Shown here piece after piece: positions 9,943 through 54,988 of a DNA stretch of 64,000 bases. This DNA comes from Trichosphaerium sp. ATCC 40318. Lineage: Eukaryota > Protista > Tubulinea. The translations under genes and the position numbers were made by a program. The DNA lies in NCBI GenBank assembly GCA_038496445.1, contig JALMLS010000452.1, positions 4,139-68,138 on the forward strand. The letters run 5' to 3'. The stretch's first letter is position 1; each line of letters opens with the position of its first letter. Under the pieces are notes generated by a model. That model was not told the DNA's origin. It saw only the letters and a list, made by a program, of their open reading frames with translations, and made no database searches.

Positions 9943-10524
9943 ATGGTAGAGTATAGAATAGTAGTCTTTGGTGTTGGCGGTGTTGGTAAATCAGCTTTAA
10001 CAATAAAGTTTGTTCATAATTTCTTTGTGGGTAGCTACGATGCTACAATAGAGGACGGATATAGAAAGATTACAACCATTGATGGAGAAAATGCAGTTAT
10101 TAATATTCTCGATACTGCCGGTCAAGAAGAGTACTGCGCGCTTAGAGAGACGTATATGTGTTCATCAGATGGTATATTATTAGTATACGATATTACAAAC
10201 CAGTCCACGTTTGATGATTTGGAGGAATTTGTGAGGCAAATACAAAAAACAAGAGGGATAGAAAACTTACCTTGTGTTGTTGTTGGAAACAAGTGTGATT
10301 TGTACAAAGATAGGCGTATTGATACATTAGATGGTAAATACTTTGCTACACGTTTTAATATGCCTTTCTTTGAAGCTTCGGCAAAGAGAAATATTAATGT
10401 AGAAAACCCATACTTTGAACTTGTTAGGGAGATAAGAAAAATAAGAAAAAATGCCGATGAAGAAAATACGAAAAAACCAAGAAAGAAAAAAAGATATGTT
10501 AAGCGAAACTGCTCAATAATGTAG
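9943..10524 (+). CDS. ras: Ras-subfamily small GTPase, intronless
   Basis: GVGGVGKS, YDATIEDGY, DTAGQEE, NKCD, EASAK, polybasic tail and CAAX box CSIM. Confidence 0.97.
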   Translation: MVEYRIVVFGVGGVGKSALTIKFVHNFFVGSYDATIEDGYRKITTIDGENAVINILDTAGQEEYCALRETYMCSSDGILLVYDITNQSTFDDLEEFVRQIQKTRGIENLPCVVVGNKCDLYKDRRIDTLDGKYFATRFNMPFFEASAKRNINVENPYFELVREIRKIRKNADEENTKKPRKKKRYVKRNCSIM

Positions 10525-44734: not shown

Positions 44735-47700
44735 ATGGGCGGCCAACATAGCATCAAAGAATCATCAGAATTAAAAGGTAATAGAAGCGAATCTTTGATC
44801 TGCCTCTACGTTTATTAAAAGTTCTTCAATAGCCGAATTGGTAGAGCTTCAATTAGTTTTCAGTAACATTACAACAGGTACGTAGCCTATTCGAGTTAAT
44901 ATTTGTTTAATGTTTTACTAGCTGATGAACTAAGGAACAGTATCCGTAATCAAGCGATAGCCAATGATATTCTGCTCTATTCAGGTTCGGTGCCTAAATC
45001 TTGCTTGTAACCAATAAATATAGTGCTTCGTGGCCTAGCTAGTACTGCGATGATGTGCATATACCAGGGGGTAAACATTGAAGCTTCCTCGTACGACGGA
45101 CGCACAGTTTTACACGTTGCAGGTACCTCGGATTTGCGCATCACCAAAACGCACTTACTTGAACTATAAAGCCACAACGGGACACTTCAATATAGCTCAA
45201 ATATTAATCAACTCAGGCGCAAGCATTGAAGCCAGAGATAAAGACGGATGCACACCTTTACATCTTGCGGGTATGTTATTAAATAATGACTCCAATTTAC
45301 GGTTCTTAGCGAATGAAGGACATATTGAAGTAGTTCAAATATTGCTCAAGTCAACAGCGGATTTTGAAGCGACGGATAACCAGGGACGCACACCTCTTGT
45401 TTGCGCAGGTAATTGTAATCTTGTAACTACTACAACTAATTCGCACTTCGTATCTTAGCCAATAAAGGACACAAAAAAGTTGCTGAGATGTTACGCCAGG
45501 CGATGATAAGTACTGAAAAAGTAGGAAAGGATGGACGTACTACTTTACACAATGCAGGTAACTAAGTGATACAGGTGTTAAGTGGATTAACTTGATTCCA
45601 AGCCCGTAGCGGACAAATTACAATTGTGGAAATGCTACTCGACTCAGGTGTAGATGTAGATGCTACAGAAAAGAATGGATCCACACCCCTACATGATGCA
45701 GGTAAATAAGTTTACTAATAATAATTATAAAACGTGCGCTCACATACTATACCAGCGTTTTATGGACACGACAAGATTGTACAATTGTTACTAAAAGCAA
45801 ACGCAAACATACAAGCATCGAATATCTACGGACACAAACCGATTCATTGCGCAGGTATTGTCATCTTTCAAGTTTTGAGTTTAAGTCTTAAATTAGCTCA
45901 AAATGGGCACAGTGAAGTTGTTGAAACATTAATCAAATCAAGTGCGAGCATTCACGCTACAGATAAAGATGAAAACACAGCTTTACATACAGCAGGTATC
46001 CTAAACTTCTACATAGTGTACTAGTGACTTTAATTCACAAAACTCGGTAGGCATCGAGGGACACAGTGAAGTTGTCGATATCTTAATTAAAAATAAAACC
46101 AACGTTGAAGCTGTAAACATCCGATTGCAAACGGCTTTGCACTGTGCAGGTACCTAAATTACTAACCACGTAATGTTACTACTTTGTTTAGTGTATAACG
46201 GGCACACTGAAGTAGTTGAAGTGTTGACTAAGAACAGCGCCAACATTGAAGCTAAAGATAAAGATGATTGTACTGCTTTACTAGTTGCAGGTAATATTGT
46301 GAGCGTGTACAATAATTTAACTCCTATTAGCCAGTATGGGCCGTGACATAGCTGCTAGTATTTTAATTAATGCTGGAGCTAACATTGGAGCCACAGATAA
46401 AAATGGATTGACAGCATTACATCTTGCAGGTAGTTTTGCCTTTTTGAATATAAGCTGATTTTAGCCTAGCATTATCCGGACACAACCCAGTTTTGCTGAC
46501 TTTATTGAAACAAATTAAAGTCATTTCAATAAGCACAACCAAGTGGCAAACAGTTTTCAAACAGATACTTAAACATGTGGTTGACAATGATACTGCATTC
46601 ATCAGTGTGTTTGAAACTCTTTTGACACAGTTTCCAAACGATCATCAAAGCCGCAAACTATGGCTATCTTGTGCACACATGAAAGAGATGCACTGGCGAC
46701 TCAATCTTGCAAAATGGCTGCAGTACTTGGTAAATTCTTAACTCAAACATTCATACTAATATAATACAAAGCCGACCCATTCTAGTTTTAAAGTTGCAAT
46801 GCAAAAAGGCATTTGCCATTTGATTTGTACATACAATCCCATGTTTGTACAGTCTTCGGTACAAACATAAAATACAAGCATACGTGTACATTAATTTGTT
46901 GTTTTTATATCAGAGCTTTTGGTTACAGCAAGGAGAGCTGATGGAAGGAATTCTATCCGACTTACCAGATGACATGTGGAGTAGTACTACACAAACTGGG
47001 TCTGTTGTTAAAATGTGTGTAAAAGAAGGATGGTGTACAAATTCTCTTCAAAAAGTACCCAAGCAAGATCGTATGTGGTTAGTGGTATAAGCAAACGTAT
47101 ATTAACTCTTTAAAGTTTTTGAATGCCGTGATTGTGTTAAAAACACACGTGGATTATTTTTGTGCGGTTATTGTGTTACTCAACATAAACACAAACAGGT
47201 AATTTCCCACGTACTACTACTTGTTTATGTGTGTAGAACCTGAAAAAGTACATCAGCGATCCAGTTGTTCGTTGTGAATGCAAGGATTGCAAACATGTCA
47301 TTAATCCTTTCTCTCCCTATCAAAGAGTTGTAAACCCTACAGCAGGTAAAAAAACACTGTTAGTTCAATAACACTAAAGCTTGAAGGATTAAAAAGTGAG
47401 ACGTCATGGGACTTAAATCCAAGATTACATTATGCCCACACCTGGGATAGATCCAACAGCAAGTGAGTAGTTACACTTGTATTTATTGACTCATGTTTAA
47501 CTGTTTTTGTCAAACAAAAAAGGGGTACAATTGAAAAAGCAACGCACTATAGAACACTGAATCTTCTTGATTCAAATAAAAATGATATTGTAGCCAAGAG
47601 AGAACTACAGTTTCTTCACCGACATATGTCAAAAATGCACGGCTATGATGAATATGATGTTGTAGAAGCTCATCTTGTTTGCAATGATATATTGACTCAA

Positions 47701-48855
47701 AACTTTGGCACATACAATACCATGCTGAAGCAAAGACACCAGTATGTTTGTAATTATTACTACCAGCGAATTCATAACATAGTTGTTTTAATTAGAGACC
47801 TACCAGACACATGGAACAAAAAAGATCACAAGCATAATAATCACAAAAATAGAGTTGCCAAACATGCTGTAAATCTCATACAGAACTCCAGTTGTATCCA
47901 TGACGTTTCTGATCAGGTACATTTTATACCTGTGCATTGTTGACCCAATAATCAGCTACCAGCTGTATTAATGGTTCATGGAACAACTCGTGAAGCCGCT
48001 TGGAGTATTGTAAAAGCTGGATTTGGAGTGATAAGTTCATTGGATTCTGGATACTATGGACAAGGAATCTACTTTACAGTACGTGCTTTTAAAAAAGTCA
48101 CCATTGACAATCTTACTTGTTTTTTTTTGAAATAGCACAGCATTAAGTATGCCTGTGCATACGACACATCTGGTGAAGATAAGAAGACACTCGTGCTTAG
48201 TTTGGTAACGCCTGGGAATGTATATCCTGTACACAACTGAAACCAATCACACTATTGATTTGTTTATTTACAAAGCATTGATAGGTTACAGAAAACCCTC
48301 AAGATAAAGCCAATCTTGTTGGTAAGCCAATTAAAGCTGGATATCAAAGTCATTATGTATTGGTAAACAGGAAAGGACAGGTGTTAAGCCAAGATAAAAT
48401 AAATAAGGCAGTATACGATGAACTGGTTGTAGCTCAAGGTAGTGATTACAATTGATGTACTTGTTGACTAAGTTGTGATTTTAGATGTACAGACTGTTGC
48501 TCGTTACATCATCACAGTTGTGCGAAAACCAAAACAACAAACAAAAAGAGCAAAGAAATCACCTGCAACATCAGAGGGTACTGGTGAATCTGGTTCTGAT
48601 GACTTGTCTGATTCTGATGATTGTGACAACTTTACCTATAAGCGGTACAAAATAAGTGTGCATCAATCACTTTCCTTACTTACTTTTGTGCAAAGACAAT
48701 TATGGGCCTCTAGCTATTTGAATGAGCCTCAAATACAACAACCAACCACACATGACAAGCTACTACAAGCGTTGGAAGAAAACAAAAGATTAAAACAAGT
48801 TCACATGAGACTTATGGAAATAACACAAACTAATACAAAAAAAGTAGTTAAATAA
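44735..48855 (+). CDS. ANK-UBR-ART protein A (10 divergent one-exon ankyrin repeats, UBR-type Zn finger, PARP-like ART, acidic/coiled-coil tail)
   Basis: MGGQHS start. 99-nt ANK exons at 45024-46429. Zn finger CVKEGWC..FECRDC..LCGYCVTQHKH..CECKDC. ART motifs VHGT..GFG..GYYGQGIYFT..YACAY..YDELVVAQDVQTVARYII. Confidence 0.9.
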
Positions 48856-49372: not shown

Positions 49373-52300
49373 TTAATTTGATGTTATTTTCTCTAATTCT
49401 AGATTGGCTTGTTTAAGTTCTTCATTTTCTTTCAACACTTGTAGTAGCTTGTCATGTGTGGTTGGTTGTTGTATTTGAGGCTCATTCAAATAGCTAGAGG
49501 CCCATAATTGTCTTTGCACAAAAGTAAGTAAGGAAAGTGATTGATGCACACTTATTTTGTACCGCTTATAGGTAAAGTTGTCACAATCGTCAGAATCAGA
49601 CAAGTCATCGGAACCAGATTCACCAATATCCTTTGATGTTGCAGGTGATTTCTTTGCTCTTTTTGTTTGTTGTTTTGGTTTTCGCACAACTGTGATGATG
49701 TAACGAGCAACAGTCTGTACATCTAAAATCACAACTTAGTCAACAAGTACATCAAATAAATATATAATCACTACCTTGAGCTACAACCAGTTCATCATAT
49801 ACCGCTGTGTCTATTTTATCTTGGCTTAACACCTGTCCTTTCCTGTTTACCAATACATAATGACTTTGATATCCAGCTTTAATTGGCTTACCAACAAGAT
49901 TGGAGTCATCTCGAGGGTTTTCTGTAACCTATCAATGCTTTGTAAATAACAAATCAATAGTGTGATTGGTTTCAGTTGTGTACAGGATATACATTCCCAG
50001 GCGTTACCAAACTAAGCACGAGTGTCTTCTTATCTTCACCAGATGTGTCGTATGCACAGGCATACTCAATGCTGTGCTATTTCAAAAAAAAATAAGTAAG
50101 ATTGTCAATGGTGACTTTTTTAAAAGCACGTACTGTAAAGTAGATTCCTTGTCCATAGTATCCAGAATCCAATGAACTTATCACTCCAAATCCAGCTTTT
50201 ACAATACCCCAAGCGGCTTCACGAGTTGTTCCATGAACCATTAATACAACTGGTAGCTGATTATGTGGTGAGATTTTATCATATTTCAGATACAAACTAC
50301 CTGCTCTGAATTATTGTTTGTATGTAGGGTATTTTCGCCAACAAGTTCTGAACAACAACCTGCAACCTTTATTTTGTGATCGGTTGCCTGTTCCCAGTCA
50401 TTTTTACAAAACAATTTATGAAGCTCTCTAAATAACAGCTAAGCTTATTTGTAGTGAATTAAGCAAGTATACATACTGATGTCTGTGTTTAAGTACTGTA
50501 TTGTACATGCCAAAGTTTTGAGTCAACATATCATTGCAAACAAGATGAGCTTCTACAACATCATATTCATCATAGCCGTGCATTTTTGACATATGTCGGT
50601 GAAGAAACTGTAGTTCTCTCTTGGCTACAATATCATTTTTATTTGAATCAAGAAGATTCAGTGTTCTATAGTGCGTTGCTTTTTCAATTGTACCCCTTTT
50701 TTGTTTGACAAAAACAGTTAAACATGAGTCAATAAATACAAGTGTAACTACTCACTTGCTGTTGGATCTATCCCAGGTGTGGGCATAATGTAATCTTGGA
50801 TTTAAGTCCCATGACGTCTCACTTTTTAATCCTAAAAGGGTTATTGTCAAATATTGAAATATGACAATGTTGTTGTTACCTATTGTGGAGGGTTTACCTC
50901 CATGATTTGGTGAGAAGGTATTACTGACTATGTGATTGCAAGCTGTGCATTCACATTTTTTGAAACTACCAATTTGCTTTGAGAGCTTCTACCCAAACCG
51001 TTAGCAAATATAAATATAAAATAAATACGTGGGTTTGATTATGTTGAGTAGCACAATAACCGCACAAATACAATCCATATTGAGAACAATCATAGCAAGC
51101 AAACGCTGTATAATGTTAATAAAAGAAATACCAACTAAACACATACTATCTTGCTTGGGTACTTTTTGAAGAGAATTTGTACACCATCCTTCTTTTACAC
51201 ACATTTCAATAACAGACCCAGTTGTTGTATTACTCCACATGTCATCTGGTAAGTCGGATAGAATTCCTTCCATCAGCTCTCCTTGCTGTAACCAAAAGCT
51301 CTGATATAAAAACAACAAATTAATGTACACGTATGCTTGTATTTTATGTTTGTACCGAAGACTGTACAAACATGGGATTGTATGTACAAATCAAATGGCA
51401 AATGCCTTTTTGCATTGCAACTTTAAAATATGGACGTGTTGGCTTTGTGTGATTAGTGCTTAATTGTTGGTAAAAAAGGCATACCAAGTATTGCAACCAT
51501 TTTGCAAGATTGAGTCGCCAGTGAGGTATCTCTTTCATGTGTGCGCATGATAACCATAGTCCACGACTGCATTGGTCATTTGGAAACAGTGTCAAAAGAG
51601 TTTCAAACACAATAATGAATGCAGGATCATCAGCAACTACCTGTTTTAGTATCTTTCTTAAAGCCATTTTCCATTTGAAAGTGATTAATGAAATGTCTCT
51701 AGCTTGTTTCAATAAAGTCAGTAAAACTGGGTTGTGTCCAGATAATGCTAATATGAATTAAGTGACTTCAAATCAAGTATATATACCTGCAGCATATAAA
51801 GCAGTACGCCCATTGTCTTGTTTGGATTCAATGTTGGCTCCTGATTCAAGTAATATTTTTACCACATTATCATGTCCTTTAATGGCTAACAATTAAAGTT
51901 AATGTGAGTAGCAGATGTTGTTATGTTTAAACAGTATCACACCTGCAATAATTAAAGCAGTACGTCCATCATTTTGTTTGGCTTCAATGTTGGCTCCTGA
52001 TTCAAGTAATACTTTTATCACATTATCATGTCCTTTAATGGCTAACAATTAAAGTTAATGTAACAGATGTTGTTATGGTTAAGCATTATCATACCTGCAT
52101 CAATTAAAGCAGTACATCCATCATTTTCTTTGGCTTCAATGTTGGCTCCTGATTCAAGTAATACTTTTATCACATTATCATGTCCATACATGGCTAATTA
52201 AAGTGTATGTGAGTAACAAATGTTGTTATGTTTAAACAGTATCATACCTGCAATAATTAAAGCAGTACGTCCATCGTCTTGTTTGGCTTCAATGTTGGCT

Positions 52301-54988
52301 CCTGATTCAAGTAATACTTTTATCACATTATCATGTCCTTTATACGCTAACAATTAAAGTTAATGTGAGTAACAGATGTTGTTATGTTTAAACAGTATCA
52401 TACCTGCAATAATTAAAGCAGTACATCCATAGTTTTCTTTGGCTTCAATGTTGGCTCCTGATTCAATTAATACTTTTACCACATTATCATGTCCTTCAAT
52501 GGCTAACAATTAAAGTGTATGTGAGTAACAGATGTTGTTATATTTAAAAAGTATCATACCTGCAATAATTAAAGCAGTACATCCATCGTCTTGTTTGGCT
52601 TCAATGTTGGCTCCTGATTCAAGTAATACTTTTATCACATTATCATGTCCTTTAATGGCTAACAATTAAAGTTAATGTGAATAACAGATGTTGTTATGTT
52701 TAAACAGTATCATACCTGCAACAATTAAAGCAGTACGGTCATTATTTTCTTTGGCTTCAATATTGGCTCCTGATTCAAGTAATATTTTTACCATATTATC
52801 GTCTCCTTCAATGGCTAACAATTAAAGTGTATGTGAGTAACAGATGTTGTTATATTTAAAACAGTATCATACCTGCAATAATTAAAGCAGTATGTCCATT
52901 ATTTTGTTTGGCTTCAATGTTGGCTCCTGATTCAAGTAATATTTTTATCACATTATTGTCTCCTTTATTGGCTAACAATTAAAGTGTATGTGAGTAACAA
53001 ATGTTGTTATATTTAAAACACTATCATACCTGCATTAATTAAAGCAATACGTACATTGCGTATTTTAGCTTCAATGTTGGCTCCTGGTTCATGTGATATT
53101 TTTACCATTTTATCATATCCTTCAATGACTAACAATTAAAGTGTATGTGAGTAACAGATGTTGTTATATTTTAAACACTATCATACCTGCACCAATTAAA
53201 GCAGTACATCCATCGTCTCGTTTAGCTTCAATGTTGGCTCCTGATTCAAGTAATATTTTTACCACATTATCATGTCCACACATGGCTAACAATTAAAGTT
53301 AATGTGAGTAACAGATGTTGTTATGTATAAACAGTATCATACCTGCAATAATTAAAGCAGTACGTCCATTATTTTCTTTGGCTTCAATGTTGGCTCCTGA
53401 TTCAAGTAATACTTTTATCACATTATCGTCTCCTTTATTGGCTAACAATTAAAGTGTATGTGAGTAACAAATGTTATGTTTAAAACAGTATCATACCTGC
53501 AATAATTAAAGCAGTACATCCATTGTCTTCTTCAGCTTCAATGTTGGCTCCTGATTCAAGTAATACTTTTACCATTTTATCATGTCCATACATGGCTAAC
53601 AATTAAAGTTAATGTGAGTAACAGATGTTGTTATGTTTAAACAGTATCACACCTGCAACAATTAAAGCAGTACGTCCATTATTTTGTTTGGCTTCAATAT
53701 TGGCTCCTGATTCAAGTAATACTTTTATCACATTATCATGTCCTTTAATGACTAACAATTAAAGTGTATGTGAGTAACAGATGTTGTTATATTTAAAACA
53801 GTATCATACCTGCAGCAATTAAAGCAGTACATCCATCGTCTTCTTTGGCTTCAATGTTGGCTCCTGATTCAAGTAATACTTTAACTACTTTATCATGTCC
53901 TTTAATGGCTAATTAAAGTTTATGTGAGTAGTAGATGTTGTTATGTTTAAACAGTATCATACCTGCAATAATTAAAGCAGTACATCCATAGTTTTCTTTG
54001 GCTTCAATGTTGGCTCCTGATTCAAGTAATACTTTTACCATTTTATCGTCTCCTTCAAGGGCTAACAATTAAAGTGTATGTGAGTAACAGATGTTGTTAT
54101 ATTTTAAACAGTATCACACCTGCACCAATTAAAGCAGTACATCCATCGTCTCGTTTGGCTTCAATGTTGGCTCCTGATTCAAGTAATATTTTTACCACAT
54201 TATCGTCTCCTCCAAGGGCTAACAATTAAAGTGTGTGAGTAACAGATGTTGCCACGTTTAAAACAGTATCATACCTGCAATAATTAAAGCAGTACATCCA
54301 TAGTTTTCTTTGGCTTCAATGTTGGCTCCTGATTCAAGTAATACTTTTACCACATTATCATGTCCACACATGGCTAACAATTAAAGTGTATGTGAGTAAC
54401 AAATGTTGTTATATTAAAAACAGTATCATACCTGCAATAATTAAAGCAGTACATCCATGGTCTTCTTTGGCTTCAATGTTGGCTCCTGATTCAAGTAATA
54501 CTTTTATCACTTTATCATGTCCTCCAATGGCTAACGATTAAAGTGTATGTGAGTAGTAGATGTTGTTATGTTTAAAACAGTATCATACCTGCAATAATTA
54601 AAGCAGTACGCCCATATTTTTGTTTGGCTTCAATGTTCAATCTTGATTGTATGCATAACATTACAATAACATGGAGATTGTTGCTAGCTACAAATTGGGT
54701 TGATACTTAACTGTTGGCAAATACAAACCTGAGTAGAATAGAATGTCTTTTGCTGTCTCAAGAGAATGTAGTGTTTGTTTCAGCACATCACCTAAAGGAG
54801 CAGCGATGTTAAAAAAAGCGAACATGTTTAAACCAAGGGAGGTACATGTTGTAATATTGAGGTATTTGCATTGAAGCTGCGCCAATTCGGCTATTGAAGA
54901 ACTTTTAATAAACGTAGAGGCAGATCAAAGATTCGCTTCTATTACCTTTTAATTCTGATGATTCTTTGATGCTATGTTGGCCGCCCAT
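49373..54988 (-). CDS. ANK-UBR-ART protein B (19 one-exon ankyrin repeats, 18 homogenised; UBR-type Zn finger; PARP-like ART)
   Basis: Same MGGQHS exon as A. ANK exons at 51787-54687. Zn finger FACYDC..LCGYCATQHNQTH..CECTAC. ART VHGTTREAAWGIVKAGFGVISSLDSGYYGQGIYFT..YDELVV. Confidence 0.9.
51787..54640 (-). repeat. Tandem array of ~156-bp exon+intron units (18 full units plus the 3' half of a leading exon)
   Basis: Unit = ag|CC xxx xxx GGA CAT GAT..TTACTTGAATCAGGAGCCAACATTGAAGCC AAA xxx xxx xxx GGA xGT ACT GCT TTA ATT xxx GCA G|gt plus a ~55-nt conserved intron. 19 'acctgc' junctions were counted on the plus strand. Confidence 0.97.

Follow-up and report, generated by a model that had tools for sequence, protein, structure and literature searches.

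Does the variation among a set of nearly identical tandem ankyrin repeats reflect selection on a binding surface, or is it what drift leaves behind at the positions that a repeat protein can most easily spare? The question is raised by a gene, here called gene A, that runs on the minus strand from 54988 to 49373 of a 64,000-nucleotide stretch of contig JALMLS010000452.1 from the protist Trichosphaerium sp. ATCC 40318 (the whole stretch, from which all coordinates are counted, is referred to as the window). The gene comprises 36 exons with GT-AG borders at every intron and an intact open reading frame (ORF) for 1270 amino acids. A sequence-only reading of the same DNA had proposed that variation among the repeats is concentrated on the ankyrin binding face, at the positions randomised in designed ankyrin libraries, and that this pattern points to diversifying selection on binding specificity. 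Taking all the evidence together, we consider it probable that gene A joins a homogenised ankyrin array, with groove residues under positive selection, to a PARP-like domain. The features on which the question turns are these:

51787-54530, minus strand: array of 18 homogeneous units, each a 99-nt exon and an intron of 53-58 nt (Tandem Repeats Finder, parsing, diversity, codon models and Pfam)
54589-54687, minus strand: degenerate N-cap ankyrin repeat exon of 99 nt, phase 1-1 (only this acceptor keeps the frame)
53030-53128, minus strand: unit 10, an aberrant repeat (comparison with the consensus)

Anatomy of the array and position of its variable residues

Tandem Repeats Finder returned a tandem array at 51783-54637 with a period of 156, 18.3 copies and 87% matches. 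Parsing of the minus strand between 54530 and 51787 resolved the array into 18 exons, every one exactly 99 nt long and encoding one 33-residue ankyrin repeat in phase 1-1 (18/18), with GT-AG introns of 53-58 nt. Acceptors were always ag, and donors were gtatga or gtgtga except after the last unit, where the donor was gtatat. In all units the intron interrupts the codon for Ala at repeat position 12, leaving G on one side and CC on the other. The exon border divides helix 1 of the ankyrin repeat, and a single 33-residue exon is therefore not a structural unit. An array had been proposed for 51787-54640; the array itself was recovered, but the top part of that range (54589-54640) belongs to the N-cap exon, a degenerate 19th repeat. 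At the other end, the exon 3′ of the array opens with a C-cap half repeat.

The ankyrin repeat (PF00023, clan CL0465) is a unit of 33 residues in a helix-turn-helix-loop arrangement. When each exon was scanned alone, 17 of 18 matched Pfam Ank_4, Ank and Ank_2 (best E = 1e-6), and a phmmer search with one exon against the PDB gave summed E values of 1e-37 to ankyrin-R and 1e-36 to designed ankyrin repeat proteins (DARPins). The gap-free alignment and the invariant columns placed the ankyrin framework in register (G4, T6, L8, A11, A12, G15, LL23-24, G27 and A28). The tetrapeptide TPLH at positions 6-9 is typical of ankyrin repeats, though not obligatory, and the units of gene A carry TALI in its place, with I at position 9 in 17 units and Y in one. 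Rfam returned no RNA family within 44-56 kb of the window. Array introns between 51943 and 54431 came in two types (...AAATAT...ACATACAC or ...AAACAT...ACATTAAC), which take turns along parts of the array (units 5-8, units 11-14) and show partial linkage to whether repeat position 5 is C or R. This arrangement may be a trace of an older 312-bp repeat of two units, broken up later by recombination.

To the known structures, a single exon aligned without gaps (phmmer against the PDB: DARPins, ANK-N5C proteins and ankyrin-R; DARPin pattern GH..V.VLL..GA....D..G.T.L), so exon residue 1 corresponds to canonical position 12. Entropy among the units was highest, in descending order, at canonical positions 14, 10, 13, 3, 1, 2 and 5. 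A second tier of variable positions (16, H/D; 18, N/K; 19, V/M; 20, V/I; 22, V/I) was mostly two-state and mostly conservative. The positions randomised in DARPins, taken a priori as 2, 3, 5, 13, 14 and 33, account for five of the top seven (hypergeometric P = 5e-4), which bears out the proposed location in the beta-turn and helix 1, with position 33 as the exception. The ANK-N5C library randomises positions 2, 3, 5, 10 and 13 (PMC4308713; PDB 4O60, 4QFV), and the crystal structure shows these joined in an uninterrupted binding surface (PMC4308713). In gene A, the union of the DARPin and ANK-N5C sets takes in six of the top seven variable positions; the strongly variable residues are thus not scattered, but fall where two independent designed libraries were randomised.

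The consensus and per-column residue sets of the sequence-only reading were matched almost exactly by the translated units, although the sets omitted Y at position 16, N at 10 and I at 1 (all from unit 10) as well as V for A at 12 (two units). Its remark that variable codons keep their third position fixed also agreed with the counts: across the seven hypervariable codons the minimum number of events was 13, 9 and 3 at codon positions 1, 2 and 3, respectively, and the third base of codons 1, 3, 5 and 10 never changes, though several of these are 4-fold degenerate. Core codons and introns had been described as nearly identical, and diversity was indeed low in both (0.02-0.04 at non-degenerate sites of the core; 0.076 in introns).

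Rates of change at the binding-face codons and rival explanations

Because the introns lie inside the array, they provide a built-in neutral reference for these paralogous repeats, all of which come from one haplotype. Mean pairwise identity among units was 92.2% for introns, 87.8% for exons and 74.6% for the encoded peptides (77.3% without unit 10), so that exons are more diverged than the introns between them; the earlier reading had called for this comparison. This signature is an unusually clean internal test of positive selection. Non-degenerate sites in the six DARPin codons showed a diversity of 0.316, against 0.073 for introns and 4-fold sites combined (permutation P = 3e-5) and 0.039 at core sites; the 4-fold sites by themselves gave a per-column diversity of 0.053-0.060. 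Parsimony on a maximum-likelihood tree of the units assigned 39 nonsynonymous and 2 synonymous changes to the six DARPin codons. With 58 intron columns and all synonymous sites as the neutral reference, the per-site rate of these codons was 4.5-4.9 times the intron and synonymous rate (P about 1e-10), and that of the core codons was 0.58 times. Codon models fitted by maximum likelihood with the a priori partition returned an omega (dN/dS) of 4.3 at the six DARPin codons (likelihood ratio test [LRT] 22.2, P = 2.5e-6). Omega was 5.2 when introns were included as a neutral class (LRT 45, P = 2e-11) and 4.7 when unit 10 was excluded from that model (LRT 37, P = 1e-9). At the binding-face sites dN/dS therefore exceeds 1, and the rate excess upholds the selection half of the earlier claim; that binding specificity, or an arms race, lies behind it is something we infer only.

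Unit 10 differs from the consensus at 19 nucleotides, with 16 nonsynonymous and 1 synonymous codon differences, and its framework changes include L23S, L24H, S26P, G4V and T6I. Intact splice sites border the unit, and the introns on both flanks are ordinary (4 differences each). Since change in this unit outpaces the neutral rate, decay into a pseudo-exon does not account for it; the solenoid may have a hinge or break midway here, or the exon may have come in from a diverged paralogue.

Several observations weigh against a positively selected binding face in a PARP-like protein. Position 33 is not variable (K in 17 units, E in one) although it is randomised in DARPins, changes at position 5 (C/R/H; CGT, TGT and CAT) follow a CpG-transition path, and changes in helix 2 are conservative and two-state. 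Surface placement was derived from alignment to solved designed ankyrins and from the literature. A four-class maximum-likelihood fit gave an omega of only 2.4 (P = 0.006) at the DARPin codons, a value to be read as a lower bound from an optimiser that had not fully converged (negative LRT for one class). The six codons contain few synonymous sites, and their own pS (proportion of synonymous differences) of 0.22 leads to a within-codon Nei-Gojobori (NG86) ratio of about 1.3-1.4; the other 27 codons taken together have an omega of about 1, showing no strong constraint. Every test uses one tree or pooled pairs, yet the units clearly recombine; ignored recombination inflates counts of change, but it does so equally at silent sites. 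RNA evidence within the array is patchy. Finally, the Pfam PARP match (PF00644), made by an exon of 41 residues, had an E value of 1.2e-3 and a score of 18.9 bits, below the 26.7-bit cut-off.

It is unlikely, in our view, that the excess of replacements was instead imported, with ectopic conversion or unequal exchange between arrays shuffling a limited number of old half-exon cassettes whose variants are long-lived. Half-exon haplotypes do reappear, newly combined (three units share ENYGC, two share RDDGC...G, and two have AMCGHDNVVK with a V/I difference directly after it), the two intron types are partly linked to C or R at position 5, and patches of 100% identity between gene A and its paralogue, gene B, show conversion acting. 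Nevertheless, no two of the 18 repeats are the same, and their N-halves take 17 forms and their C-halves 15. Old variants kept only on the binding face would still require selection that favors diversity, and such a history changes the account of origins more than the conclusion.

Relaxed constraint by itself appears distinctly unlikely as the cause. Surface residues would then simply drift, while framework, silent sites and introns would be held alike by purifying selection or gene conversion. Natural ankyrin repeats generally vary most at these same positions, and designed libraries chose them for that reason; the low NG86 ratio within the six codons and the omega of about 1 over the rest of the repeat also speak for drift. 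However, drift cannot outrun the neutral rate, and the 4.5- to 4.9-fold faster change of the binding codons (omega of 4.7-5.2 with introns as neutral) leads us to reject neutral drift at surface sites. Introns (0.076) and 4-fold sites (0.053-0.060) agree in diversity, which makes a hidden constraint on both unlikely. Clusters that had merely escaped gene conversion and drifted would have had their third positions freed too, yet in the hypervariable codons those stay fixed.

A chimeric or collapsed assembly of paralogous arrays, or exons absent from the mature mRNA, seems most improbable: 156-bp tandem units at 88-92% identity assemble poorly, RNA contig depth across the array is patchy and the sole listed exon-exon joint within it (51885 to 52716) has a 22-nt side common to several exons, but exact length, phase and splice sites recur in every unit, the 1270-residue frame is open across 36 exons, RNA contigs with 0-1 differences sit on individual units, and the RNA holds the intron after unit 18 and exon-exon junction sequence.

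Gene A, its domains and its inverted paralogue

The model of gene A was guided by RNA contig joints from three runs and by the reading frame. RNA contigs support 13 introns in the 3′ part of the gene, the intron at 51748-51786 after unit 18, and one intron in the leader. The remaining parts of the gene, and its neighbor, are as follows:

54946-54988, minus strand: exon 1, encoding MGGQHSIKESSELK with an MGxxxS start (gene model; 100% identical to gene B 44735-44777)
54846-54890, minus strand: exon 2, a short helical leader (intron 54792-54845 backed by an RNA joint in runs X2 and X3)
54729-54791, minus strand: exon 3, leader (RNA joints, gene model)
51485-51747, minus strand: C-cap half repeat (ALSGHNPVLLTLLKQ) and linker domain (RNA joints 51747 to 51787 and 51442 to 51485)
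50880-51105, minus strand: two Cys/His-rich exons (51029-51105 and 50880-50988), putative zinc finger (translation, RNA joints)
49775-50256, minus strand: PARP-like catalytic exons 50134-50256, 49984-50076 and 49775-49928 (weak Pfam PARP match, motifs)
49373-49722, minus strand: last two exons, with a basic/acidic tail, a coiled-coil-like end and the stop codon (translation, RNA joints)
44735-48855, plus strand: gene B, inverted tail-to-tail paralogue of gene A (exon-wise comparison)

In run X1 an RNA joint connects 51885 with 52716; unit 18 is joined by its start to unit 12 at its end, and 830 nt are skipped. We do not count this joint as evidence of exon skipping; its short side is the 22 nt shared by several exons, and it may reflect collapse of the repeat. 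In runs X2 and X3, an RNA contig of a related organism (organism B) has 37 other letters in place of 54532-54628. The reverse complement of those letters reads K-N-N-N-E-S-T-A-L-I-D-A, the C-half of a repeat, with the same framework as in gene A and different residues at positions 1, 3, 4, 5 and 10. This different C-half bears, as a hint only, on polymorphism in repeat number between individuals.

The predicted protein begins with MGGQHS, which is myristoylation-like in having Gly2 and Ser6 as in the consensus of N-myristoyltransferase (MGxxxS). To judge from these first residues, the products of genes A and B may be anchored to membranes through N-myristoylation. The 87-residue linker had no Pfam match, and a phmmer search with 51485-51745 found no true homologue among 1.84 billion representatives. 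One candidate from that search (P0001), a low-complexity repeat protein of 1611 residues, was discarded as spurious, with summed weak stretches only. P0001 consists of near-identical Cys/His/Ser-rich repeats of about 66 residues, and it looks like a wrong-frame or antisense translation of a tandem array in another organism.

In the C-terminal domain, candidate PARP-like motifs occur in the expected order, H (VHGTT), Y (GQGIYFT) and a putative E (YDELVV), all read from the translation, and PARP accounted for 66 of the 100 nearest named clusters in Atlas (best score 0.87). The exons concerned were scanned against profiles one by one rather than spliced. Two of them, searched against the PDB with phmmer, recovered no PARP: exon 50134-50256 gave only spurious summed matches to TALE repeats, and exon 49776-49928 gave none. 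No NACHT, NB-ARC or SAM match to Pfam was obtained in any stop-free piece of gene A.

Gene B shares the N-terminus and C-terminal domains of gene A, and between these it carries about 10 ankyrin repeats that are diverged from one another, again one exon each. One repeat per exon is therefore ancestral, and the array of gene A is a recent amplification of one type of unit. Between the C-terminal exons of the two genes, dS was 0.128 and dN 0.054 (omega = 0.42), which serves as an internal control: the effector half is constrained, whereas the binding face of the array changes faster than neutral. Gene A exons 51356-51442 and 50756-50831 are 100% identical to gene B 46786-46858 and 47387-47462, respectively, and the exons next to these pairs are 82-96% identical, a mosaic that suggests gene conversion between the two tail-to-tail genes.

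Related loci were sought by a protein scan and by a DNA scan of metagenome contigs, and none were found in either. Elsewhere in the window, positions 9943-10524 of the plus strand hold an intronless ORF for a Ras-family GTPase of 193 residues, whose best database identity is 57%. So low a top identity for a Ras-like protein indicates that the protein collection searched contains neither this genome nor close relatives of it, and the host genome's proteins in general have no close relatives in the databases searched.

Gene A is transcribed as well as intact. Its product runs from a myristoylation-like leader through about 20 ankyrin repeats, a linker and a Cys/His-rich segment to a PARP-like domain, a divergent ADP-ribosyltransferase by this reading, and ends in a charged tail; it is probably a recognition module in rapid evolution, attached to an enzyme of PARP-like type. 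The 18 repeats arose by recent tandem amplification of one 156-bp exon-plus-intron unit, with homogenisation continuing and neutral divergence among units standing at about 8%. Onto this background, positive selection has probably driven replacements into those residues of the beta-turn and inner helix that face the solenoid's concave groove, the outcome being 18 repeats that each present a different set of binding residues in an otherwise identical framework. The anatomy, the splicing of the 3′ part, the register to designed ankyrins and the excess in rate are demonstrated by the data; we infer beyond them that the groove binds one partner or several, either long or quick to change, and delivers these to the PARP-like domain for ADP-ribosylation. 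The symmetric exon-intron units would favor unequal crossing-over, by which the number and order of repeats could change, as in the repeats of fungal NLR proteins. A more far-reaching idea, which we regard as very doubtful, is that the phase 1-1 cassettes with their identical introns constitute a diversification device: a family of such genes could yield many in-frame receptor variants through regulated skipping of exons or through unequal exchange, whether meiotic or somatic, and would so provide a unicellular eukaryote with a combinatorial ankyrin repertoire for recognition, coupled to an ADP-ribosylating effector, for example, in defence or in discrimination between self and non-self.

Comparison with known systems

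Should isolates turn out to differ in this family, then, in a eukaryote that has received little study, it would represent a candidate system for recognition or defence, and it would also offer a natural catalogue of the residue sets tolerated on an ankyrin groove. A constant scaffold with diversified binding residues is in itself familiar, known from fungal NLRs and copied by engineers in DARPins, and gene A presents it in a different architecture. What differs is that the repeat is an exon, that the introns are homogenised, and that a PARP-like effector takes the place of a NOD module.

Tankyrase-type PARPs are built of ankyrin repeat clusters (five conserved ARCs) followed by a SAM domain and the PARP catalytic domain, and their repeats are ancient and diverged, with strong conservation from species to species. 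Like tankyrase, in which the array recruits substrates, gene A has a long N-terminal ankyrin array and a C-terminal PARP-like domain with a putative set of H-Y-E-like motifs. Unlike tankyrase, gene A yielded no SAM domain, its PARP match falls short of the cut-off (18.9 versus 26.7 bits), and its linker and Cys-rich regions are without homologues; in place of five ARCs, its repeats form a single array that is homogenised and hypervariable. The exon clusters of arthropod Dscam and the LRR cassettes of lamprey VLRs resemble the array in another respect, being tandem, frame-compatible modules that each contribute one unit of a binding surface. In contrast to both, gene A gave no evidence for alternative or mutually exclusive exon use or for somatic assembly, and introns of 53-58 nt suggest constitutive, intron-defined splicing.

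DARPins and ANK-N5C proteins share with gene A a constant 33-residue framework and variation at beta-turn and helix-1 positions. The gene A repeats are natural, however, and they depart from the designs in several details: position 33 stays K, variation reaches position 1, where the designs conserve an Asp, TALI stands in place of TPLH, and the variable sites make use of Cys and Gly, both excluded from the designs.

The closest precedent for the gene A array is the internally conserved repeats of fungal NLRs. The ANK, TPR and WD repeats of these proteins are highly conserved internally, as in Podospora Pa_3_8560 and the nwd/het-e family (Dyrka et al. 2014, PMC4986451). A few positions of the fungal ANK domain are under positive diversifying selection, and they lie on the concave face, within the inner helices and in the beta-hairpin (PMC4986451); concerted evolution together with shuffling of repeats has been proposed as the generator of diversity (PMC4986451). 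The repeats of gene A are likewise tandem and near-identical, and positive selection acts at concave-face positions as mapped through the register (omega of 4.3-5.2). For inclusion, the fungal study set a minimum of 85% identity between repeats over no fewer than 100 residues (PMC4986451), and at 75-77% amino-acid identity those of gene A lie below this level. Gene A further differs from the fungal NLRs in that neither NACHT nor NB-ARC was found in it, and it differs too in its one exon per repeat, its homogenised intron and the placement of its repeats N-terminal to a PARP-like domain.

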